The position numbers and the translations under genes are program-made. From Paraphysomonas bandaiensis (taxonomy: Eukaryota > Protista > Chrysophyceae), in NCBI GenBank assembly GCA_965644295.1, contig CBFFRP010000298.1, positions 625,505 through 689,504 on the forward strand: a DNA stretch of 64,000 bases, written 5' to 3'. Below the pieces are notes generated by a model. It saw nothing but the letters and a program-made list of their open reading frames with translations. It did no database searches and had not been told where the DNA came from. Below, piece by piece: positions 3,571 to 20,513 of this stretch (its first letter is position 1; each line of letters opens with the position of its first letter).

Positions 3571-6500
3571 ATGAATAATAGATTAAGATCTGAAGATAGC
3601 AGACGAAGGAGTATTTCACCTACAGAAGAGAGTGGTGTGTTTGTATTGCTTTTAATGGGCTCTTCTGATGCTGTTGTGTTGTAGGAACTCCATCTGTGTG
3701 GAATGTAATGTACAATGCCGTATTCTCCAGTGAAGAGGCTACTGACATGGAAAGCGAGTATGGTTATACACTCTCAACACATTTGTCCAGTGTATTTGAG
3801 CGTCATAATTCCGAGGCAATCGCACATGTAATGGATACCCTTCGCAAAGTAGCGAATAATGTAAGAAATTCAACGTTCGAACGACGGCAAGGCATCAGTC
3901 ACTTGCGTGCATGCATACGTGTGCTCAGTAGCTTTTTAGAAAAGCATGCTTCCCCGTATGATTTCCTGCTGTTCTTGAATGCTGTCTTTATTTTGAACGG
4001 AACTGCAATGGATTTTTTAAAGAAATCGGACATGAGGGAATACTATACTTTCGTGGATAGTGTGTGTTCTCTAACGGATCAAGCTTTCGTAAATCCGTTT
4101 CGTGACCCGAATACACATGAGGAAGATGACCGTGAGTACAATGGTAGTGTGGATGTATACAACCTTGTTGTTGGTATGAAGGATTATATCCCCTTGAAAA
4201 AGCTCGTCCATGATATTTCACGTTTCATCTCAGACATGGTTGAGAGTAGTTATGGTAGAGCATCGTGCAGGGATATCATATGGCAATGTTTCCTACTAAT
4301 TCTGATGGTGAAAATGCATATCGGTCCTCGTTCACCATACAATACTAGTGACTTCGTCATTAGTAGCGTAGTATTCGTCACCAATAAGATGCTTCCTATT
4401 TTGAGAAAATGTATGAGTGATTCTCTTGCTACTGCAGAGAACATAGGAATCAGCTGGCTACACTGCTGTGGTGACCTTTTGGCGATTAGATGTCTTCTTC
4501 TACCGATTGAGGTTGTTTGCAGCGTTGCGGTTTATGTCAGCGATACTCCAGCTTCCCTGCTAATGTTGCCCAAAGTTGCAGTGTTCGGTGTCAGAGCAAT
4601 GGAGGAAGTGAACAACCGTGGGAAAATTGAATTGATGCGAAATAGAGAGATGAATGTGCGGGATTGGGTTAAAAAGGTTGATACCCATCTAGCACACTGG
4701 ATATTCACAGTAATATCCCGCGCGCCACCTGAATACCAAGACAGTGTAGTGGAAAAATGGAAAATTGCGTTGTTGAAATGGACGAATGCCATGGATTCTA
4801 TGAGACGGAAGCCATACACTGGGAAGAATAGCCCTAAGACTTTGAAATTCTGGGAGTCTCTGTTGGAAAGGTTTGCAGTAATGGTTGAGGGAGATCGCGT
4901 GGGTACCGTAGTGGCAAGTGTACTGTGCTTGGCCGCCCCTGATTACTTTAAAGAATATATCCGCACTCAAGTCGCATCACTTGTTTCCAAGGAAAAAGTT
5001 AAGCTGAACTTTAACTTGCTCATGCAGTGTGGTATTACGCCATATGCTCTGACTAATCACAGGGTCGTGGAGCATCTCATCATCCGTGGTGTGAACTCAT
5101 TTTCACGGCAAGGCACATCTAGCAGTGACCTTGTTACCAAATATGCCCCAATGCTTGCCTTTCTAGATAGCACTGTCTACGAAATGAGAGAGCTTGCAGA
5201 GGAGGATCAGGCGAAGTGTGTACGCCATGTGTTGAAATATCTTGCGGTAACCATCGACGCAATGGCATCTGCACTGAGCCGACAATATCACTCAAGCCAC
5301 CGTTTTTCCATAACTCCCCAGGATTATACACTTCTTTATCTACTCATTCCATTTAAGCTCGCGGAGTTTGGGACTGTAGTTGATGTTTTCATTGATTCGG
5401 AAAAGGTGGACTTGGAGACAATTCGTCGAGCTCTTGCGTCGAGTGTGCACAAATTTGCAGCTGCATTGCTAGGAGAACTCCACCTTGATGGCGGGCGCCG
5501 TGCCCGACTGAGAGAGGAAGAGATGATGTGGCTTGCTGTTACAGATGGGGCTAAAGTGAAACGAAATCACCTGTACGGTGAAATGTCTGATATTCTGAGT
5601 TCTGCATGCATGGAATATATTTTGTCGAGCCATCGACAGCGAGCCCTCATGTGTAATTTGCGCACCATCGACACTCTTGGATTTGTCATAGGAAAGGCTA
5701 CGCGCTATTTACCAGTAAACTGTGATCAATGTTCAAGTGAAGAAGTTGTTTATATTCCACTCTTTTCCATAATGATGGCGTCCTATATGCTGTCGAATTT
5801 GCACGACGCGCTTACCGACAATGTTTTTGATTGGCCAGATAATACTCAAAATCTATTTTTCTTTTGTGACCACATTGTAGGAGGCGCTTGTGATGCATGG
5901 AATGTGGGCCCCTTGGATGAGAACAACGTTATATCTCAATTTTATCAAACTTATTTTCCAACCAATAGAAAAATCGACAATTTACTGGTGGATGTTAAAT
6001 CTATTACATGTGATATCATAATTCGACTGAATGAACCTGTCAACAATCATAGTCTCTCGCTTGCGCAATTGCGAAAGCTGGACTCACACCTTGACGAAAC
6101 GACAGCGTCGTGGGCTTATTGTAAGCTGGAAATGGTATTTGATCCACAGCTCTGCAATTTGCATGAAAAAATACTACTTCTCGAGAGTTTTTGCTCTCGG
6201 TTAAATCAATTGTACAGTGTGTTAAGTTGGCTTTCATCACTTGGTCTCTCAAAGAATATGAATCTGGTTCAAATTCCGACCGCTGATGATCTGGAAAATG
6301 AGCCTTGCGTCAATGTGGTCAGAAGAATGAAAGAAATAGCGAACATGTTAGGAACTGAAATACACCCTCCACTCTATGAGCTGGATAATGTGTTGACGCA
6401 ACTCTGTTACTTCATAAGCAGTGGTTCTAACTTGTATAGTCATCATTTTTCTGAGTATATTGCACAGCATGCTAGTGGAGGCGTGCTTCCTTTTGGTCAG

Positions 6501-9500
6501 AGAATGGGAAATTTGCTGCATGATGCTAACACAATGGCGATTGCAGCTCTTCGACGATTGTTGGAAACAGATGACATATCGTTGAGCGACTTTGCTGAGG
6601 GAGGCGTGGATGGATTTATGCAAGGACTGTGTGGTAGATCGAAAGAAGATGTTCTCAAGGAGCTGAAGATAATAACGGACTTCATGGAACCGAATACCGC
6701 TCAGAACATTGAAATTGACGATGTGCAGAGTAAAATGCTGCGCGTGAAGCATGCAGTGAAGCTTTTACGCATTCAAAGTGTTCTTGGAAAAGCTTTAGAC
6801 GCCTGTATGAGCCCTGAAATCGGCCTCATTAAAAATGTCACAGCACTGGGGTCTTCTACGTCTGATTTGTGTGATCTAGATTGTATTAGGCGTGATTTAG
6901 AAACTCCTGGCGCAATAAAACTTTCACAAGTGTCTCATATTTTGGTTAGGTTACAGCGGTTGTTAAATGGACTAGAGGTTTCACATTTACAATTGCTTGC
7001 TGAGTTGGCGAACTGTCATCAGCTGTTGGTGTTTCTTCAATCTGAGAAAGATTTCGAGGGGCAATTGCAACTCCACACGCAAGACATGCAGGGTACAGAT
7101 ATCGGAGAGAAAGTTTTAACAGACTTAGACATAGCACACAGATTTTTGAAGTCTTTGCAATTAACTGAGGCAAGAGGTGCTGGTCCAGGATTTACTCTGT
7201 CGAACTTGACAAGTTTACTAATTTCGGCCGTACCGTCAGAAGCAGATGCCCTTGAGAAACTTGCCGCGGTAACATCTGCTTCCGAACATATGGCTGAGAT
7301 ATCGTTGTGGTTTAGCGGGGGATCTGCAATATTTAATCTACAAAAGCTTCTCTCTATGGTTAGAAAGTACCTTACTGATGGAACATTTATCTCAATACTT
7401 TCTGATGATATCAATATGTCGTCGTTACAACTGCGTGTTAGGCGAACCGACACACGCACGGAAAATGTAAAATCAGAAGTTCTTGTCGAGTTAGTTCGAG
7501 GAGTTGTGCTCAGTAGGGGAGAGGCATCAAGTGACGAGGATCGACAAGTACTTGACTCCTTTTTAAGAGCCTATGATCATGCCCAAAGAACTCACAATTT
7601 ACTCATTCGTGCTAGACTTAATAGCGTACCACACTTTTATAATGTCAGCGTTTATGAAATCTCGCTTTCCACGGATTCTAAGGCCCATTCACAGGTAGAG
7701 TTGGAGATCAGCCAGTGGTATGAAGAATACACAGCGATGTTGAATTCTTGTAAACGCCTTCACTTTCTGTCTAGAAAGCAGATAATGACTTGTCTCCATC
7801 GACTGTTGTGTGACGGTAACACCACTAACCTCTCCGGTTACGTCCGAATGTGCTTTCCAGATATCGACGGGCAAGTACCTTCTATATTTGAACAGCTTGT
7901 CAGCATGCTTAAATCTGACAGCAAACATACATTTATTGGTAATCACGCTGAAGCTCTCCGAGAATGCCTGCGAATTTTCTGTGAAACTTTGAACAACTGT
8001 AACCAGATGTTATTGGAATATGGACTCATCATGGAAACAGAAAGTTACATTCCTACGAATAGTGGTGTAGATATCACGCAACCTATGCCAGTGGTTATTA
8101 AATCTTGTTCACGTTTGCCCCATGTGATTTATACTGAGCTTATTGAACGATATGAAGGCGCTCCGCTACCGTCGCAAGTATTGTGGTGCACACACAATAC
8201 CACTGCGGACGAACTGCGAGATTTCGTGTCTAGAGCTAGTGCCTGGCCGTCCATACGTTTTGCATTTATGAATGTTAACATGTTGCGTGCCATCTCAAGG
8301 GATGTCTTATTAGAAGCATGTCTCGATACGAATGCGGGCCTAGCACTTCATCCTAAAGTATTTCTTTTCTTTTCAGGAGATAATGGTCTCGATGCTTTCT
8401 CCGTTCTTCGGAACGAGTGTGTAGACGACAGTGATGTACAATCAACGTATTTGCGAAATGTTGATACTGCTTCAGGAATGAGCCAGCTGTTTCCTCAAGT
8501 TAACATCATTTCAGGAGGACCGTGTGTTGGAAAGTCTACGTATATACGAGATCAGCTCAAAAGTATTTTGGCGAATGAAGAGAATTCGAAGAGTTTAACT
8601 GTTAGTGTTCATGAGAACTTTCTCTTGAGCTCCTTAACACAGCAGTACACAGAGGAATGTGCATCTGCTACTGCTGTTGGTTTACACATTAACGTCTTCG
8701 CCCATTCCGTCTATCGCGCTGTTGATAAGATCGATTTACAGGAAGAAGAAAAAGAGTTAATATCCCATCTACATCGATCAACTCAGTTTTTACACGCCCT
8801 TATACACTGTGGACTTATTGTGGACGATCTATCGGGCACCGTTGTTCAACTGAATGCGGTATCAAAGCACTACTTTTTTCTTGAACTACCTTCAGTTTTA
8901 TATTGTGACGGGACATCGATTCGCACATGTCCAGCGCACAACACGCCATGTGAATCACATATATATGCTTCTCATTTATCTCCAGCCGTGCATGCAAAAA
9001 CATTGCACGTTGAAGTGAACAGCAAGAGTGTTCCGTTTAAAATATCTGAAGCTGCACGACTTGTCGCGTATTATGTAGACAAAGCAACAAACCATAGTCG
9101 TATCGATGAATATCCAACAGAAGCAATAGTGACACCTGATGTATTTTCTGATGCTGATGCGCGAAATGCACTCGAGGTAATTTGGAATAACGAACTGTTC
9201 GTCGAGGAACCTAACTATCGTACAAAAGATAAATTCATTCGCCTAATGATAATCAGAATTCGCTTTTTGATCGATTATGTTCCGTTTTTTAGATACGAAA
9301 GTCAGGAATCTCGTTGTTCAGACGCCATAAATAAGGCGGAGACACTAGCGCAGGACTGTATGAAGGTGTTCCTACAAGAAGTGATATCAGTGTGCAGTCA
9401 GTTGTCTGGGGATTGGTCAAAAGCTCCTTGTGCTTTTACGGTGAGGTATAATTCTGGAAGCAGATATCTATTAACATGTTTATGTGGAGACAATTACTTA

Positions 9501-12500
9501 CGCAAAATTCCACAAAATATGGTCGATACAGTTATGTATATTGATAACGCATGTGATAATCCTGCACTATGGGGAGAGTTGAGAAGGGAGGTCGCATTCG
9601 CATACCAAATGGCAGACACTAATCGTGCTCTCGAACTTTTACAAGCGCAAAATTATATTCTCACCCCTGATTTTGCTGTGAAATTGCTCGTACTAAAGGA
9701 TCTTCATGACGCAGGCTCCACTGTAGTTTTGCAAGGAAGTACAGGAACTGGAAAGACGGAACAAATACAAATGCTTTCTCTTTTACTGAATAACGGTAGC
9801 GATCTAACACCGATGATGACCCAAGAAATGTATTCTCTTCTCTCAGAACTTGTCGACTGCAATATTCTATCTCCAACGAATGAAAACCAAGCATTATTAT
9901 TTGAAAATAATGGTGAATTACGAAAAAACCAGAAAAATGCTTTTGATGTAAGTTCTTTTTATGTATTTATGCAAATGAATGATGTACTCTAATAGGCATT
10001 TTTGCTATATCTTGAGGATGCATCTGGCAATTTCATTGATGCAGCTGGTCCAGTAGTTGCGAACTACTTCCTGAAGTTTTACAAGAAATACAAGTATCTA
10101 CGGAAAACTGGTCTTGTCAAAAGTGTATTGCGTGCTTTTGAAGGGACTGGTGATAACTCAGAAGAAAATAGCCTTGAAGCAGTTCCTGATGTTTTTGATA
10201 TTGCTGATGCGATGACAGCAACTGACACATCTGAATCGGCGGTTTCTGGACGTAGCGTGTTCAAATCGTGTGGCGAAATGTTGTCATTCTTACGTGAAAT
10301 TTCGAGTGAACTGGAAGATATTTTTTTTGTTATTCGCATGCATGAAGGAATAACAGCGAACCACTGGCGACAAAAGGTGTCTCGCATAGAGTGTGCAGCT
10401 CTTCGTATGCCAGATATCAATATTGTGGCCTTTGTTGATGAATTGAATACATCTGTCATTATGGGAATGGTAAAGGAAGTAATGATCGATGGAACCATGG
10501 ATGGTCGCGTCTTGCCATCAAATATATTTTGGGTAGGTGCAACCAACCCTGTTTCATCCCACGATACACTTTCAAAGGGCAACGTGCCTAGTTTAGATTT
10601 GACTTTGTCTAATGTGGGAATTGATGACGATGATGATATCAATGAGTATATTGTAAGATCTCTTCTACCTTCATTTGAATGTACTGTGCTTGGTGTGGGC
10701 AGCCTCGCTGTGGAGCAGGAGAAGAATTTTCTTGCGGCATACTTGTTTGACAAAAACCTTGGGTTTGCATCCGCTATAGGGCAAGACCGGAATATACTTC
10801 CGTATACATGGTTTTCGTTTATGAGGAATTTTATATTAGCATCGCAAGAATTTGTTCGTAAATGCGGTATGCACAGAACTAAAGTCAGTATTCGCGACTT
10901 AATGCGAACATTGCAGCTGTATCAGGTTTTCAAATTATATTTTATTTAACTCTTTCTAAACTATGTATTACAGTTTTTCTTGAATCCTCGAATTTCAGAT
11001 TTCTTCATTCCACGAACGAATGCGACTTCTATAAATCCTTCAATCACAGATTTCACGTGCGTGTGCTGGTGTTCGCTTTGCCTTTCTGTCGCTACAGTGT
11101 ACTATTTGCGTCTCAGTAGTGGCCGGTCTAGAAATGGCATCGGTGTCAGCACTGAGAGTGGAAATGACTTGCGCTCTCTCTTTGTCGCGAATCTTTTTCA
11201 GGTAATATACGAGTATGATGAAATAAGCCAGTTGAACGAACAGCTTCCGTTTTTGGGGGTATTTGAAAGCTCCTTGCTGCATGTCTTTCAGTCCACTTCT
11301 ATTCCAGCTGGAATAGCGCCTACACGTGCCCTTCAAGAGAATGTGTTTGCATGTGTTACTTGCTTTTCGGCCTGCTTACCTGTAATAATAACTGGACCTC
11401 CAGGGTGAGTGACATATCTAAGAGTGAGTGACATTGTGACATATAGTTATCGTGTATATAGGTGTGGCAAGACTTTAGCAATGCAAATTGTGTTAGATAA
11501 TATGAAAGGTGCGTCATCTCCCAACAGTAATTTTCAGCGATTAAAGAATGCGAACCGATTTACGTATCAATGTTCTGAAGGCAGTGCTGCGAGTGAAATA
11601 AAAGCTGTGTACGAGAATGCTCTTCAGCGACATTCCCGGTTCACTCGTGCAAGGATTTATTCTGAACGGTGTGTGGTGTGTTTAGATGAAGCATCTCTTC
11701 CACGTAAGCGTCGAGCTGCTCTGAAGGTCACACACTATTACTTAGACAGGTCTCGTGATTCCGACCGTCCAGTAGTATCAACTATTATGTTGACCAATAG
11801 GACACTAGATGCAGCGAAAACAAATCGTGCTGTACAACTATTACAGTCGATGCTATCTTCCGATGACCTGTATGCTTTGGTGAAAGGTTGTTTAATGACC
11901 GGTGGAAGAATCCCGCATACTCAACAGACTATGATAAGAGGGTTATGTAATGCTTTCCAAACAATCGAACAGCTTTATGATATTGAAGGGAGAAAAAATG
12001 TATTTCAACTAAGGGATTTTATCTTCTTTTTGCGATACTTAAGACGAGGTATATTATCAAAAGCATCACGTGGAGATGGCGCAGCACGATTAGCAATTTC
12101 AAGCAATACTTTCGTTCTGAGTGCGATGGATATAGTGGCGTCACTTCGTCGAAATTTCAATGGCATGCAGCCATCTCAATTCGAAAATATAGTGAAACAC
12201 TTTTTGAGACACACTGGTCATGATCAAGTTGTCAGCGACCCGAAGCTATCTCAATCTGGAATGTTCGAGCCTAAAGTATTAGAGACTTTGAGAGAATCTT
12301 TGGATGACAGTATTGAGGACGGTGAAAATCCGAATCACTCTGCATTTAGACATATAATGATAATTGATAAGACTGACACCGAATGTGGGATTTCCCTTCT
12401 TTTTGATATGAAGTTTCTTAACCCAGACACGACTGACATTTGTCATTTAGCTGATTTCTCTGATGACACACATGACCGACAGAAAAGTGAACTTGCGGCT

Positions 12501-15500
12501 CGCATAAAATATTCAATTGAGCAAGGACGCACTGTAATATTGTCGAATGCACAGAGTATTTACTCTGCATTCTACGACCTTTTCAACAAGCACTATTCTT
12601 CAGTTCGTGTGGGCTCGCAAAATCCTGATGGTACTGTCGGATCCCGGCAGTACTATGCAAACATCGGTATTGGCTCGCTTTCAAGACCTTGTATTGTACA
12701 TCCCAAGGCCAGAGTCATCGTTCACGTGACGCGATCAGAGTTTGCTAAGATACAGCTTCCATTCCTTAACAGATTTGAAAAATACTCAATTTCTTTGAAA
12801 GATGTTGTATCTGAAAAGCTTTGTATGCTCTCGCGAAAGAGCACTCTAGTACCATCAAAGCTTAAACTTAAAGCTGAATTGTTTAAATTTGTAATGGATG
12901 GAGTGCGTCACTTTGTTAGTTTTTTAGGAGAAGGTGCCTTCTATGGCGTAGTAGCTGACGAAACTATAGCAGCGCTTATTCTTCGGAGTATCAATGACAG
13001 TGTAGCAGCTGAAAGTGATGTGCCTTTATTTCAATCTGCTAGACATGTCAGCGCGAATAGCAGTTCTAATACTCTACATTATTCATCTGCGAGTATTTTA
13101 CCGGATGATGGCGAGGGAGAAGCTATGCATATTGGAGATGAGGGTGACTTGTTGCCTTCCGAACTTCCTTTCGGCAGTGTTGAGGAGGATGTAGATGATC
13201 GATATGACATTGAAGCATCAAGAAATTCTCTTGGTTTGTCCTCAGACCCGTTTTGCAATATCGACAAGTATATCCGGACTGTTAATTTCCAGTTACTGCA
13301 GGTATTTGATTGTGTTTTGTTTATTTCGTGATTAATATAGTTTTTCTCCTGTGTAAGCTTGTGCGACCAGAGGTATGTTGATTTAGTAGCTTTGACAACT
13401 CGAAATTTATAAGTTATATTTTCTAGGTATTATTCGCTAGGCGTAAAGAACTCCCGAGGGCATACCTGGAAGAAGCGCTTCAAAGGCAGGAGCACTTTTC
13501 TGCGGTTAACCTAATTCGCGGGTTGTCACTGTCGCACTGGCAGAATTCTCCAAATGTGTTCCCATCATCTGACACCAACGTATGTACAAAATGGACCATA
13601 TTTACCCGGACAAGCAGTGAGTTGTTGCAGCTGCCATCATCGTTTGACAGTCAGAAGCAACTCCTCCCTGTTTTAATTCGAAATGAGTTAGAAAACCAGG
13701 ACAGAAAGGTTGCCAAGAAAATGGTTCACGTTGTGTCACTGTCTCAGTTTCATCGCAGCATGGATTTTGAAGATGATATGAATGAATTTTTTACTAATGA
13801 TTCCCAAAACCTAAAGCACCGACGTCTATTAGTTCTGATAGCTGATAGGGGAGTCATATCTTCTTCTCAAGTTTCGTTTGTGATGAGGGCTGTGGGGTCT
13901 TGCACAGACAGGCTTGCTGCTGAGTCTCGTCCACTTGTAGTTATTATTCAACACTTCAGTGTTGAGCGAACACACCTCAAATCTGTGTATGATGCGCTAC
14001 CATTTGCTGGTTGGGATATGTATTATGTAGACTCCTTCGGATACTCAGAAGATATATTTATCTCAACCAGAACTCCTGGTGCTAAGGCCACCAGAACTGT
14101 TGGCAAGGAAAATAACTGGGCTGAAGAGGAGAAGCAAGGAATGTCTGCATCGCGGTGCACAGGACCAGTGTGTACATCGTTATCTCATTCTGATATGGCT
14201 GACATTCGATCCTGGATGCTAGTTGCATATGGGCTAAAAGACACACCGTCTAAGAATGACGCTATTATCGAGTTTTCGAAGTCCGCTTTGTCAGAGATCA
14301 AATACATTGGCTCGAATATGTACGGTGTCCGTAGATTAAAAAAACAATTGCAGGATATGGGTATTTCGAGATCATTGCCGGTATATCTTCTGTCTCGAAA
14401 TAGCGGTGGTGGAGAGTGGTTGCATTCTTTTTTCAGTTCGCGCACATACTTACTGCATGAAGTACTGTCGCATGTAACATCTGCGTGGGGTTCAGTTCTG
14501 CACAGAGCTGTCAGTTTTTCAGTTTCTTGCTTGAGTGAAGGTCGGTCATCTCTTGGTATGATGGATCACACACGTGTGGCGCTCGCGAATTTTTTAAAGG
14601 GATTTGTTAGATATGTTGTAGTTCAGCTTGCTAATGATTATGGTCTGGAATCTCTTGCGGGCCTTCCTGTAGATTCCGAAGGTGGTCAACTTGATGCGAG
14701 TCCTGTTGTGAAGTTTGTCATATTAATGATAAGAAGTATGCATCCTCCCTCAGAAGAATCTCTGAAACGCTATGCTAACTCTAATGTAGTGACGATATCT
14801 CTTGATTCTTCGTTTGTTTGCGAGACGCCGTTGTTTCATTTTGTTGATCAAGCTCTGTCTACTATCAAGAATGAAATTGTGATGAAAGAAACATCCGCTG
14901 GCTTGGGGAGTGATAATTCCCTCCACAAAAAGCTTGAGTTGGAAGTACAGTCGCACACCCAACTCGATGAAGCTATCCGGGTGTTGTCATCAACGCCGAT
15001 GCTGCATTCAAGATTCATTCGTGATTACATTCGTGCGGCATTACCCCACATTTTACTCACTGATGAGGAAATGGATGTTCTTGAAAAGGTGCTTTTGCTG
15101 CAGGAGAATGTGTCGCTTTTGATGCTGTATGCGGAGCCGAAAGAGGAGCATATTCTTGTGGATATACTGGCCGTAATCTCACCGTTGAAGTCACTAAGTA
15201 CTATTCCGAATAGCAGGTGGAACGTGGGAAGTGTTCTTCAGTTTTTGGATGGACAGAGTGTGGCTGGTCCGGGCAACAGAGATTCTGACAAAGGCATAGT
15301 TTATGATCTGGAGTCATTTGTTTCTAATTTAACTTGGGATGCATTGCTGGATATTGTCGTTTCAGATAGTTGTGAAAGCACATTAGAATGTCTTAAGTGC
15401 TGGGTTATAGCTGCAAGAGACTTAGGGAGTTTCAGCAGTTCGCACATGCAAAACACCGAGTTACTCCGTTTTTTATTGATGCAATTCATTCACACGATAG

Positions 15501-18500
15501 TATCACAGTACTCAGGCGAAGGCGATATATACCAAGCCCTGGTGAAATCTATTCGCGCACATCTCCGTGATATCGAAGCTGATGAATCATTCTCTGTTTT
15601 GAAAGTAACGATGTCACTTCTACATGACACTGTGAAGACAATACATGTGACAGATCAACAGCGCGCTGATGTATATCGCTCTGTTTCGTCGGTAATATTT
15701 GATTCTATTTTTCGAAACCACTCTGGATATACTGATACTGATCTGAGAATATTCGTGAGTGCTTTGCTTCGAGTGGGATATGATTCTTACCACGAAGCCG
15801 TCAAAGTTTCGGTATCTTATATCCACAGTGCGATGATTACCAGTTTGCTTTATGCTCTATTGGCTGATGATTCCTTGCGATTTTGTGGAGTTGTAGATTC
15901 ATTGATGACAAGACCACTCCCCTTGTATCATGGCCTGGTAGTGTTGTCGCCAATTCGAGACGCTGTACAATCTCTGCCTTCAACACTTCCAGTAGACTGT
16001 ATTCCTGATCTACAGAAGTTTCCTGAAACAGTTGTGTCATTTCCGGAGCAGGGTTTTGTAGACGCTTTGTTTTCAGCTATGGTAAAGAAGTATAAACAAG
16101 ATGTATCAAGTCGCACGTTTTCTGTTCAATTGACAGATATGTATGGAATATACACCAGACTCAGTAAAGTTGAAAGCTCAGCGTCAAAAATTGGAATGAC
16201 TGCATCTGCTGTTGGTTTGGTAACGTACATCGCTTCGTCACTCTCACGCGATAGAGATTTGATTGCTCCGGTCGCGGCATTTAGCGGTACACTGCAGAGT
16301 TTATTTTCTGCACATCCGGTATTGATTCCTTTATTTGTGGCATCTTTTGGTACAGATGCTTCAATGATGCAATTCTTAGGAGACCAAGAGAGTGTTATAT
16401 CGATGGGACTGCCTGAGGCTTGGTTCATGGCACAAGAAATGTCTGCAGAAGAGTTGTTTAGATGTCCGCCTTGTATGATCTCGACCAGACAACCTCTGTC
16501 GGTGGAGTACGCGGAACTGCGTCGCACGCTTCATCGATCGGACTTAAGCGCCGAAATGCTTTGTGATTGGGCTCGAGATCGCTGTGTTGATGATGAAAGG
16601 ACTCTTAACTATCGAATGATGCTTACACTCGCATCATACCACGAAACATTTTCTCCTATTTGTAATGGAAATGAACGGGGAATCCTCATTTCGAGAGTGA
16701 TCTTGGAGTGCTTAGAGATGAGACAGTTTCAGGAATCCTTATCATTGACCGGCGATGAACAATCTATTTTGCGATGCATCGCTCAAGGTCCCCACGATAT
16801 TTTGTGCAGCACTCACGACGGATTAATGTTCTATTTTTCGCGAGGAGAATGCCAGGATAAAGTCAGTGCGATGCACCGTACAGCAGCAGTGAATACTATG
16901 GCGATGATTTTAGGCTCCAGAAGAAATGCGTGCTACTATTACAACTGCTGTTTTCATACTGAAGACATGCACTCGAGTCAAGGGCTTGGATCCGGTTGGG
17001 GACGAATATCCAAGGACTGTGGCTATCAAACTACGTTCAGGAAAGGTGTTTTGAGTTTCGATGATCATGCACCGAACCCTGCAGGGGCCAAATTTGGAGA
17101 AATAGTCAGCATGCGCGCTATCAATAATTACTTCATCTGGATAGCCTTTGCATGGGGAGCATGGGTCCGCATGGACCGATCTCCTCGCCTCACAGATGCG
17201 TACACTTGGACGACAACATATCCCGATGATTATGCACCTGGGTGTCCAGATGTAACTGACAAACAGAGGATACTTGGAACAATATACGCTAGAGCTTACA
17301 GCTTCTTATCGATTTTGCAAAGTGATCCTAGACTTAATCGAATTGGCGTGGATTTTGAACTTTATATTTCACTGTGTTCTTATCACACTGCCCTCAAACT
17401 CTCCACCTGTACTGACCAATATGGATACTTTAGCAACTCTAATCTCGAAGATGCAACGAATAGGCAGAAAAAGTGCATGAAATACCTGTCACGTATCTGG
17501 AACGATGCGGAAAAGAGCGTACCTGGTGTGAGAAAGGAATATCTTCAGAACAATGTTGCTAAAGTAGAATCTATCATTGCATTCAAGAGAGGATGGTCAA
17601 ATGCAGTTGATGGCATAACATCTTTACCGGACAAAGCAGCCATTGATGCTAAACTTGTTCTTGAGGTGCCTTCTGATGGGGAAGACCTGCACAATATACA
17701 AAATCGATGCCGTCTTTTTATTGCGTCAGTACTGGGCAAACTGGATAGACTGAATCTGAATTTACACTTGCCGATAATTGTACACTTCTATAAGTGGGTT
17801 CACAAGAACTTGTCGTATCGAGTGTGTACTACGGAGCAGTATATTCCTATTAACACTGCGATTGACAAAATCGACGATGCTGAACTCAGGAGATACGGAC
17901 ACACACTTTTTAACAATTTTTTGGTATCATGGAATTACTTAGTTCAGACAATGGGTGAATTAAATGGTGTGTGCCCTACTGCAGCTGCAGCTGGGGAAGC
18001 TGAACTGCCCCCTCTGCAGCATGACTCTTTGCTGTGCCGCATCTTGAGTACTGGTGAACCGGACGCAGAAGATGTCATCATGCGATTGATGAAGAATCAG
18101 ATAGGACCACAAAATGAATTATTAGATTTGGACGAAGCTAAAGAACTGTTAAGCACGTCGTCACCGTGCTCTATCAATCCGAACTGTACTTTGGTTAGCA
18201 CAAAGGCAGGGAAGTTTCACTTATTGACATTACCTCCATCTTCTTCAACCCAGAAGTGTCCATTCTTGGCTGGTGTTGAAGATGTGAATGTGTTGTATAA
18301 CCAGATTGCTAGTGTAGCAACACGACCGCTAGGATACAGAGAAAGCAGTGGTAATGAAACTTCTGGATTTTGTTTTGATTATCGAGCTGCGGCAGTGTTT
18401 TTAATTAGATTATTAATATCCGGGAAGCCTAGTCTAGTGTTGCACCCAAGACCCGCTTACTTCACCTTTATTCCTGATGTACAAGACCGCGCGTCTCAAC

Positions 18501-20513
18501 CCATTGACTCTAACTCAATTGAGACTTGTGGATTATTTGACCCCGTGTGTCGTGTATTACAACTAACGAGGGACCTCAGAAAAGAGTTTAAATTTCATGA
18601 GCACAAGATCTCCAGTAGTGTTGAAATTACAGCTCTTTTGCGACAAATTCGAGATGAGAGTACGTCGTTTCAATATGTTAGTATGGTGTCAACTATATGC
18701 GAGGAAATTATTGCTAGCTTACATATGGGCGCAAATGAAGAGGACGGTGCTCATAGGCGGAGGGATATATGTCTCAATATGCCTGTGCGGTCTCTACTGA
18801 GCTCAAGTCTTCCTGGTGGTACGATTCGTGCTGTAGCGCAGCTTTCTGTTCGTTCGACGATTTTGTTTGCTGAATCAGTGTGTCGTGTGCACACGAATAG
18901 AGAATACATGTTTAGTTCCATGCAGCATAAACACATGATGGCTCCCCTGAGTCCGAATGTGGAGTCTGTACTCCGGAATAATATGGATAATCTATTGTCC
19001 GTAAGTTTAGGCACTGCACTAAATGGTGTTTTGCAGAAAGTACAAGAGCTAATTGAACTGCTCACATCAGCTTCAACTCGACATACGCTACTTGAAAATC
19101 AGCAACATGTACTTCTTAATAGCATTCCTGAATTGAGAAACATTTTGACAGGTAATTCTGGTATCGCTGATAGCGTTCAGTACGAATGGGCGATTTTTAT
19201 ATCAGAAGTTGAAACTGTAAGAGTAGAAAATGTGGTAGCTTTTCTTCGTATTCTTTCAGAATTTTGTTCGAAAGCAACTGCCAAACTAACGTCCAAACCT
19301 CAAGCTTCTGGTGACGCGACCGACGTGATTTACGCGGAATTGGTACGATACTCTATGTACAGCTATCAACCTCTTAATCTATGTTTCGTAGGTACCGGAG
19401 GATATGCAGGTCTTCCAATCTCTTGGGGCAGATGATATAGTGGAGAATGAAGCTCACTCGAAAGTCGAAGCACACAGTGCCCTTCATCTTCCTCCGGCGG
19501 TGCTGCATGATGACATTGTGGAGAATGAAGCCCAGTCGAAAGTCGAAGAAGCACATAGTGCCCTTCATCTTCCTCCGGCGGAGCTGCATGATGACATAGT
19601 GGAGAGTGAAGCCCAGTCGAAAATCGAAGAAGCACATAGTGCCCTTCATCTTCCTCCGGCGGTGTTGCCATGTTCTCCACCTCTGAGTGCGGCAGAGGAG
19701 AGAAAAGAATCTCCATTTTCGTCACATATGACTTCTGTAATTACTCTGGGCAAAATGTGGGGCTCTCCAGTCGCTGATTTGCTAGAGCTGTCAGATAGAA
19801 TACCTCATATTTTCAATTTTTATGATGACGGTGAGAATTATTTCGTTAAAACTGAAGATATCTCATCCGTACTGAATAAAATAATGACCAAGTTAGTATC
19901 CATATCAACATTCGATAAGTCGTTGGAAGGTATTGAAACTGGCGTTATCGTTTCAGTGCTCCGAGCACATGACGTTCCAGTGTTTTCTATCATGCGTGAA
20001 CTGTACATACTCGTGTCTGATAGCGCTGTGGCAATGGACATACTTGGTGGCGATGCTGATGTATCCGATGGGTTTCCAATTGAAACACCAGAATTGGGGA
20101 CTCAGACGAGTGTCGAAATAGAACAGGGATTCAGAAATGGGGATAGCCCCTGCGAAAAGAAGACGTTGACTGATACCTCTGCATGTTGGAATATTTCCGT
20201 TGATAGTTTGATTTACCTGGCTAAATGTGGCATACTCAAGGTTAGCCCCCCTCCTGGCGCCATTGTAGGCCAAACTCCAGTGGATGTGTCGTGGACTGTT
20301 GAGGCGAAAGATATGTCTGAATTCAACGATGTTGTGAGTGCGAAACTTATAGACCTGAGCCACCTTCAAAATGTGTTTGACAAAGTCAACGTTGTTGATA
20401 TCGTCCGAAAGTGTGGGATATACGTCATTGAATGGGGTATGTACTGTTACATTACGCTAGACAACCAGGATAGGGCCACACAAGCCTGTATTGACGCTCA
20501 TATGACATTATAA
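3571..20513 (+). CDS. RNF213/mysterin-like giant AAA+ ATPase (putative E3 ligase), ~5526 aa, 8 exons
   Basis: Exons 3571-3634, 3685-9947, 9996-10925, 10974-11404, 11462-13301, 13358-13372, 13427-19342, 19392-20513 are all GT-AG and in phase (exon 1 is the least certain). Motifs colinear with RNF213: LPSQVLWCTHNTT, GGPCVGKSTY, YILTPDFAVKLL..GSTGTGKT, FVDELNT, GATNP, VSIRDL, ALQENVF..GPPGCGKT, YQCS, CLDEASL, NRTLDAAKTNRA, FQLRDF, RRNFNG, FYDLFNKHY, PFLNRFEKY, QEHFS, and C-terminal LHLPIIVHF..FNNFLVSWN. Confidence 0.9.
19430..19666 (+). repeat. Coding minisatellite, 3 x ~78-81 bp (26-27 aa, DDIVENEAQSKVEEAHSALHLPPAxLH), in the last exon of the RNF213-like gene
   Basis: Three near-identical tandem units are visible in both DNA and protein. 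Confidence 0.95.

Follow-up and report, generated by a model that had tools for sequence, protein, structure and literature searches.

The window analysed here is a stretch of 64,000 nt from Paraphysomonas bandaiensis, a marine single-celled eukaryote, and all coordinates of the gene described below are positions in this window. We found that 3571-20513 of the forward strand is one expressed gene, which codes for a giant protein of 5,526 amino acids (aa). Comparison of its sequence with public proteins places this gene in a so far undescribed family that is sister to RNF213 and nearly pan-eukaryotic, and its homology to RNF213, together with the common architecture, can be accepted with high confidence. 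The explanation that we favour, if only mildly, is that the protein is a member of this sister family and a predicted cysteine-relay ubiquitin ligase (E3) gated by its ATPases.

A sister family of RNF213

The exon coding for the AAA4-like unit matched 1,406 cluster representatives (210 of them at an E value of 1e-30 or better), many of which are 4,000-6,200 aa long. Exon-by-exon blastp searches revealed that the relatives are colinear with the protein between roughly aa 900 and aa 4750. Members of the family were found in (i) alveolates and stramenopiles (Chromera velia A0A0G4IBB0, Mallomonas), (ii) Amoebozoa, dictyostelids and Archamoebae among them (Mastigamoeba, Mastigella, Pelomyxa schiedti KAH3761459, Endostelium, Heterostelium album D3BCI0, Tieghemostelium), (iii) Heterolobosea (Naegleria gruberi D2VRS3, Willaertia), (iv) opisthokonts (the choanoflagellate Mylnosiga and the chytrid Nowakowskiella), and (v) malawimonads (Gefionella) and a picozoan. 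All the named members are annotated merely as hypothetical, uncharacterized or "AAA+ ATPase", and full-text searches of the literature yielded no description of non-animal relatives of RNF213 or of the named accessions.

In a tree of the AAA4 region (80 rows, quick method, midpoint root) two clades, A and B, were resolved, each with a support of 100 in the Shimodaira-Hasegawa-like approximate likelihood ratio test (SH-aLRT). Clade A comprises cnidarian "RNF213-like" proteins, a Mesostigma protein with an RZ finger, and a paralogue encoded in the P. bandaiensis genome itself. Clade B comprises the gene studied here, with Chromera as its nearest neighbour (40-46% identity in AAA4), and a second paralogue from the same genome. 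The hallmarks of clade B were all found in our protein, namely the colinear core, the interval of ~245 aa lacking a RING, and the D-C-G loop within the E3 scaffold.

The clade-A paralogue (G000:C219, ~164,900-179,900; loci L010 and L012) is a multi-exon gene of the RNF213 type, with a U-box (E 1.5e-16) where the RING sits in RNF213 and a canonical, intron-split RZ finger (C-x3-H-x6-C-x8-C-x2-C-x8-H). Its AAA4 region matched RNF213 at E 4e-86, as against E 1e-18 for the gene in the window; judged by these matches, C219 is the closer relative of RNF213 in the genome. The clade-B paralogue (G000:C108, ~118,000-138,000, minus strand; loci L011 and L013) is nearly intron-free, with an open frame of 5,389 aa; a VWA domain is inserted in it, it contains an IQ motif, and classic AAA domains are arrayed in tandem at its C-terminal end.

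Since the gene falls into a separate clade, and since the C219 paralogue is closer to RNF213, we regard it as a member of the sister family and not as an RNF213 orthologue. A preliminary description, made from the sequence alone, had proposed an RNF213/mysterin-like protein in a protist. The protein is indeed full-size, transcribed and RNF213-like, but it belongs to a clade of its own and is not the organism's counterpart of RNF213.

The AAA core

A phmmer search of the PDB with the AAA4 exon retrieved RNF213 only (E 1e-18), the match beginning at the Walker A lysine, taking in Walker B and continuing for ~450 residues beyond it. A family profile of the region upstream of this exon (A3) matched the AAA3 P-loop of RNF213 at E 4e-13 and, weakly but in colinear order, the AAA2 region including its P-loop; the other PDB entries found with A3 were generic P-loop proteins (E 0.0065 or weaker). 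Neither dynein nor midasin, both of which are held in the PDB, appeared in the searches with the AAA4 exon and A3 at E values up to 1.

The nucleotide-site pattern is that of RNF213: the AAA2-like unit has a P-loop without an acidic Walker B, and Walker A, Walker B and sensor-1 are all present in the AAA3- and AAA4-like units. The ATPase motifs are invariant across 65-69 relatives. In RNF213, AAA2 binds ATP, and AAA3 and AAA4 are the catalytic units (PMC7311170). The order of the AAA motifs, and the complete Walker A and B of the units corresponding to AAA3 and AAA4, had been recognized in the preliminary description; all of these motifs have now been located and translated (Table 1), and they agree with RNF213.

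The remainder of the core was less accessible to sequence searches. Pfam searches with all six exon translations gave only a sub-threshold AAA_19 match, and phmmer searches of the PDB with exon 2 alone and exon 7 alone gave no useful match. Profile searches of the PDB with the post-AAA4 block (A2), the E3 module (A1) and the D-C-G loop within that module (A4) found no RNF213, and for this reason the homology of these segments had to be established from folds and profile-profile comparison. The model of the post-AAA4 block, built from a 30-sequence alignment (predicted local distance difference test, pLDDT, 75), consists of one alpha/beta domain plus helices. In Foldseek searches RNF213 was its top match (prob 1.0, E 4e-5), with dyneins at prob 0.5 or less.

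The E3 scaffold

The E3-scaffold module covers ~640 alignment columns and is conserved in more than 60 relatives. The best nine Foldseek matches of its AlphaFold model (pLDDT 78) were all RNF213, and comparison by VIA-align with human RNF213 4201-4906 gave Z 21.8 for 530 aligned residues, against Z 7 for the entry ranked next. This match is specific to RNF213, because according to the authors of the RNF213 structure its E3 scaffold has no other counterpart in the PDB (PMC7311170).

Profile comparisons linked the module with proteins that carry an RZ finger. With hhalign, the family profile A1 matched the RZ-type modules (97.4%, E 1e-11), and the family hidden Markov model (HMM) of the E3 module matched 20 of 123 clade-A proteins, the best of them being the RZ-bearing P0258 (E 2e-21); no match was obtained when A1 was compared by hhalign with the Mesostigma tail alone. 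The scaffold of the C219 paralogue downstream of the RZ position is homologous to the module of our protein (HMM E 7e-12; hhalign 76%), and C219 aligns onward to human RNF213 ~4666-4900, in register with the structural alignment. Of the "RNF213-type C-terminal region" announced in the preliminary description, the E3 scaffold was confirmed, but there is neither a RING nor an RZ, and no match was found for the last ~780 aa.

The missing zinc domains and the D-C-G loop

Neither a RING or U-box (Pfam) nor a CxxC motif was detected in the ~245-aa interval in 35 family members (this protein and 34 relatives). There are no CxxC clusters anywhere in the 5,526-aa protein, and hhalign comparison of the interval with the U-box region of C219 gave a null result. 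The RZ finger (PF20173) was found by Pfam neither in the protein nor in 31 loop segments of the family at E values up to 10. Regular expressions for RING and RZ had no match in 89 long relatives, the RZ pattern being too strict even for the RZ finger of Mesostigma.

The family has instead a loop that is shorter than the RZ finger and contains the D-C-G motif. Among 34 relatives its Asp is invariant, Cys and Gly are each conserved in at least 90%, and an (I/M)GG-like motif follows. This loop appears to occupy the RZ position, as suggested by three observations: (i) the anchor blocks that flank the C219 RZ finger align on both sides to the E3 module of our protein, (ii) the downstream homologous block lies at a similar spacing, ~115 aa past D-C-G here versus 138 aa past the RZ cysteine in P0258 (by HMM column), and (iii) interpolation in the structural alignment puts D-C-G at the position of RZ. 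The proposed correspondence is one of position.

The absence of RZ may extend beyond clade B. Among the clade-A proteins P0161-P0278, many of which are cnidarian "RNF213-like" proteins, 4 of the ~120 listed carry PF20173 in precomputed Pfam annotation, and many animal RNF213-like paralogues may also be devoid of the finger.

The N-terminal arm and the C-terminal tail

The N-terminal arm has no Pfam domain and no convincing neighbour in the Atlas (weak and unrelated ones only), in keeping with the earlier remark that no domain could be recognized in it. None of 150 relatives contains a homologue of the first ~600 aa encoded by exon 2, and Pfam searches with the N-terminal arms of 39 relatives yielded nothing. 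That the arm might be a lineage-specific sensor, as proposed in the preliminary description, is a guess. For the C-terminal tail, the segment to be compared with the C-terminal domain (CTD) that RNF213 has after its E3 module, there was likewise no homologue and no Pfam domain, and its Atlas neighbours were weak and unrelated. Judged from these searches, both ends of the protein are fast-evolving and lineage-specific.

In other members of the family the tails carry recognizable domains. A USP/UCH deubiquitinase (E 3e-41) was detected in 4 of 53 tails and a WWE domain in one of the 53; SAM was also found. The USP/UCH domain is located at 3189-3537 of P0021 (Endostelium zonatum), whose tail also contains SAM, and at 5371-5680 of P0049.

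The last exon of the P. bandaiensis gene starts with a 27-aa repeat, encoded by an 81-nt unit present three times in tandem at 19431-19668 (91% matches). One RNA contig, judged by its size, stops near this tandem repeat (~19,570).

Structure and transcription of the gene

The six open reading frame fragments that the preliminary description had joined into a protein of ~5526 aa do form a single coding sequence (CDS), of 16,581 nt (Table 1). All seven introns are bounded by GT and AG, and each is 48-57 nt long. The junctions 9947/9996, 10925/10974, 11404/11462, 13301/13358 and 13372/13427 are seen in spliced RNA contigs, which come from two runs made on the same organism (contigs of 14,740 and 10,731 nt) and from a marine metatranscriptome. 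These contigs skip 13302-13426 but retain 13 letters, which, when set against the sequence, correspond to the 15-nt micro-exon. In a DNA run from this organism the introns are present. The public protein P0026 (2,483 aa, 100% identical) spans exons 5 to 8, the micro-exon included. Transcripts and P0026 thus cross the exons in one frame, as expected for the single gene originally proposed and not for separate ones. The RNA check suggested for the seven junctions bore out six, which are backed by spliced contigs or the identical public protein; the exception is intron 1.

A variant genetic code was considered for the four open reading frame pieces that share a frame, and was rejected. The standard code was kept because the stop codons in frame fall within GT-AG introns of 48 nt, which are removed from the RNA.

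At two sites the window differs from the same-organism runs covering them, the DNA run included: at 8508 these runs have G and the window A, and at 9891 they have A and the window G. Both mismatches look like strain or allele differences with respect to the assembled window.

Table 1. Features of the RNF213-related gene of P. bandaiensis (positions in the 64,000-nt window)
Feature	Position	Strand	Remarks
Whole gene	3571-20513	+	8 exons, 7 GT-AG introns; CDS 16,581 nt = 5,526 aa
Exon 1	3571-3634	+	ATG at 3571; 21 codons + 1 nt
Intron 1	3635-3684 (50 nt)	+	Inferred from ATG at 3571, frame and size of RNA contig
Exon 2	3685-9947	+	N-terminal arm, family-conserved pre-AAA region, AAA2-like unit, start of AAA3-like unit
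N-terminal arm	3687-6386	+	~900 aa, lineage-specific, no Pfam domain
Walker A, AAA2-like	8514-8537	+	GGPCVGKS; no DE Walker B after it
Walker A, AAA3-like	9735-9758	+	GSTGTGKT; aligned with RNF213 AAA3 P-loop
Intron 2	9948-9995	+	Spliced RNA contigs
Exon 3	9996-10925	+	AAA3-like Walker B and sensor-1
Walker B, AAA3-like	10431-10442	+	FVDE (exon 3)
Sensor-1 Asn, AAA3-like	10545-10547	+	Exon 3
Intron 3	10926-10973	+	Spliced RNA contigs
Exon 4	10974-11404	+	End falls within AAA4-like Walker A
Walker A, AAA4-like	11394-11474	+	GPPG/CGKT, interrupted by intron 4
Intron 4	11405-11461	+	Spliced RNA contigs; splits AAA4-like Walker A
Exon 5	11462-13301	+	AAA4-like unit; direct sequence match to RNF213 AAA4
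Walker B, AAA4-like	11676-11690	+	VCLDE (exon 5)
Introns flanking micro-exon	13302-13357 (56 nt), 13373-13426 (54 nt)	+	
Exon 6 (micro-exon)	13358-13372	+	15 nt, LVRPE; in all spliced contigs and P0026
Exon 7	13427-19342	+	Post-AAA4 block, RING-less interval, E3 scaffold, start of unique tail
Post-AAA4 block	13430-15502	+	AAA5/6-like alpha/beta domain and helical part; fold match to RNF213
RING-less interval	15395-16273	+	~245 aa; at this place RNF213 carries a RING and the C219 paralogue a U-box
E3-scaffold module	16130-18172	+	Matched by fold to human RNF213 4201-4906 and by profile to relatives with an RZ finger
D-C-G motif	17015-17023	+	Flexible zinc-free loop at RZ-finger position of relatives
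C-terminal tail	18173-20513	+	~780 aa, lineage-specific, interrupted by intron 7
Intron 7	19343-19391	+	Confirmed by public protein P0026
Exon 8	19392-20513	+	Last exon, rest of unique tail

Proposed function and alternatives

According to the explanation that we favour, the E3 scaffold itself would dock a cysteine-reactive ubiquitin-conjugating enzyme (E2), in the manner of RING-deleted RNF213. The cysteine of the D-C-G loop would form a thioester with ubiquitin, or with a ubiquitin-like protein, before handing it to the substrate, and the binding of ATP at AAA3/AAA4 would turn the ligase on. The variable N-terminal arm and tail would select the target, which might be the surface of a pathogen, an organelle or a lipid droplet. 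RNF213 deprived of its RING retains wild-type-like auto-ubiquitylation (PMC7311170). Ubiquitin chemistry is favoured because the scaffold and the Asp-Cys loop are kept, because RNF213 is active without its RING, and because USP, WWE and SAM are fused to the tails of relatives.

Several points weigh against this explanation. In the family alignment the four zinc ligands of RZ are absent, and the general-base His is not conserved (our protein has one 16 residues after the Cys, and Chromera has none); as far as the alignment can tell, the zinc site and the conserved general base are lost, which counts against ubiquitin chemistry. In a few relatives DCG is replaced by DYG, and the profile of the D-C-G loop alone (A4) retrieved no RZ from the PDB and Pfam. 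The equation of D-C-G with the nucleophile of RNF213 rests on colinearity and on the likeness of the motifs ((D/E)CG ... (I/M)GG). Furthermore, the homology searches and folds were run exon by exon or per segment, and of the six AAA units of RNF213, three of which (AAA1, AAA5 and AAA6) are degenerate, it was the counterparts of AAA2, AAA3 and AAA4 that were located by their motifs. A working transthiolating ligase that uses the D-C-G cysteine is accordingly put forward as a tentative proposal, to which we would give somewhat less than an even chance. A role in defence would be speculation, and we consider it distinctly improbable. The broader picture, in which clade B would be an ancient family, of roughly the age of the last eukaryotic common ancestor (LECA), surveying intracellular microbes or organelle surfaces by a cysteine relay from a zinc-free D-C-G loop gated by AAA3/AAA4, is in our opinion unlikely as a whole.

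The alternative that survives best is an ATP-driven scaffold or remodeller without ligase chemistry, with an E3-like module that is structural or serves as an adaptor and a cysteine that is structural or binds a partner. We consider it possible, although rather unlikely. It is favoured by the lack of RING, U-box, RZ zinc site and conserved His; the strictest conservation is found in the ATPase motifs, and the C108 paralogue has gained further AAA modules and a VWA domain. On the other hand, RNF213 itself functions without its RING (PMC7311170), and the family has kept the E3 scaffold over ~640 columns, together with a flexible loop in which an Asp-Cys pair is invariant. The fusions with deubiquitinase and WWE domains also speak for ubiquitin chemistry and against a mere remodeller.

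The protein could also be a working ligase with a housekeeping role at lipid droplets or organelle surfaces, rather than in defence, which seems to us a little less likely again. Surveillance of this kind has also been reported for RNF213. The family is old and has been widely retained, by phototrophs (Chromera, Mallomonas), an osmotrophic chytrid and phagotrophs alike, and transcripts of the gene occur in cultures and marine metatranscriptomes for which no challenge is known. However, the presence of several paralogues per genome (at least four in Pelomyxa) and the hypervariability of the ends would be more characteristic of conflict genes.

That the gene is the organism's RNF213 orthologue, an immune ligase which would form a coat on intracellular bacteria or viruses and attach ubiquitin to targets other than proteins, for example lipopolysaccharide (LPS), is improbable to a still higher degree. 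Ubiquitylation of LPS by RNF213 depends on the zinc ligands of RZ and on a conserved general-base His. The architecture and the ATPase pattern do match those of RNF213, and fast-evolving, lineage-specific N- and C-terminal regions would suit an immune protein. The organism is, moreover, probably a heterotroph, because light-harvesting genes are absent from its genome (the 62.6 Mb of G000 gave no match to PF00504, the chlorophyll a/b-binding family). These arguments are opposed by the full support on both sides of the split between the clades, by the much closer C219 with its U-box and RZ in the same genome, and by the absence of the very finger that modification of LPS requires.

Finally, a midasin/Rea1- or dynein-type AAA protein, or separate genes wrongly joined, can be regarded as refuted for practical purposes: relatives do carry Pfam AAA_5 and AAA_7 (dynein-related) and dyneins occur as weak fold matches, but only RNF213 was found at convincing E values in the PDB, Foldseek placed it far above dyneins, as the preliminary description would lead one to expect, the E3 scaffold is RNF213-specific, and spliced contigs and P0026 run across the exons in one frame.

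Significance

A single stramenopile genome holds both an RNF213-type gene with U-box and RZ and a member of the sister family, in which the ATPase switch and the unique E3 scaffold are kept and a simple cysteine loop stands where the zinc-finger active site stood. The range of the sister family takes in alveolates, stramenopiles, Amoebozoa, Heterolobosea, malawimonads, Picozoa, a choanoflagellate and a chytrid, and the question of where RNF213 came from can now be put to the test. The members of this family are natural "RING-less, RZ-less" variants that can be used to dissect the mechanism of the ligase, and tractable carriers (dictyostelid-type amoebae, Naegleria) are available for asking whether the original role was defence or housekeeping. 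If the proposed cysteine relay is true, it would represent a new type of E3 active site, built on the RNF213 scaffold without RING, U-box or RZ.

Comparison with known systems

Dynein heavy chain and midasin/Rea1 resemble the protein in the general idea of a single-chain ring of six AAA units and in P-loops of the AAA_5/AAA_7 type. They differ from it in the lack of a sequence match in the PDB and in folds that are weaker matches than RNF213, and the E3 scaffold is not one of theirs.

ZNFX1 combines RZ with a Miz/U-box-like domain; its RZ has the same Cys/His pair as RNF213, and the pairing of U-box and RZ is reminiscent of the C219 paralogue. In contrast to our protein, which has neither RZ nor Miz/U-box, ZNFX1 is a superfamily 1 (SF1) helicase and not an AAA ring. 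The RZ domain of ZNFX1 has been traced to choanoflagellates (ZNFX1 preprint). A third RZ-type finger of the P. bandaiensis genome (G000:C186:24843-24968, locus L007; E 2e-11) lies outside the RNF213-like genes, and the gene containing it may be ZNFX1-like.

The C219 paralogue belongs to the same superfamily and has a colinear AAA core, but it possesses the U-box and RZ, both of which are missing here. With the other giants of clade B the protein is colinear over ~aa 900-4750 and has in common the ATPase motifs, the RING-less interval and the D-C-G loop; the N-terminal arms and tails vary by lineage, some tails carrying USP, SAM, WWE or extra AAA domains.

RNF213, described as conserved in all vertebrates (PMC7311170), is among the closest of the known systems (structures 6tax, 7oik, 8s24, 9jwg). 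The P. bandaiensis protein differs from it in having no RING, no RZ, no Cys-x3-His/CxxC ligands and no conserved general-base His, in its unrelated N-terminal arm (~900 aa) and tail (~780 aa), and in its separate clade in the AAA4 tree. What the two share is a giant single chain with an N-terminal arm, a dynein-like AAA ring and an E3 scaffold, and within a flexible insert of this scaffold a cysteine in a (D/E)-C-G context.

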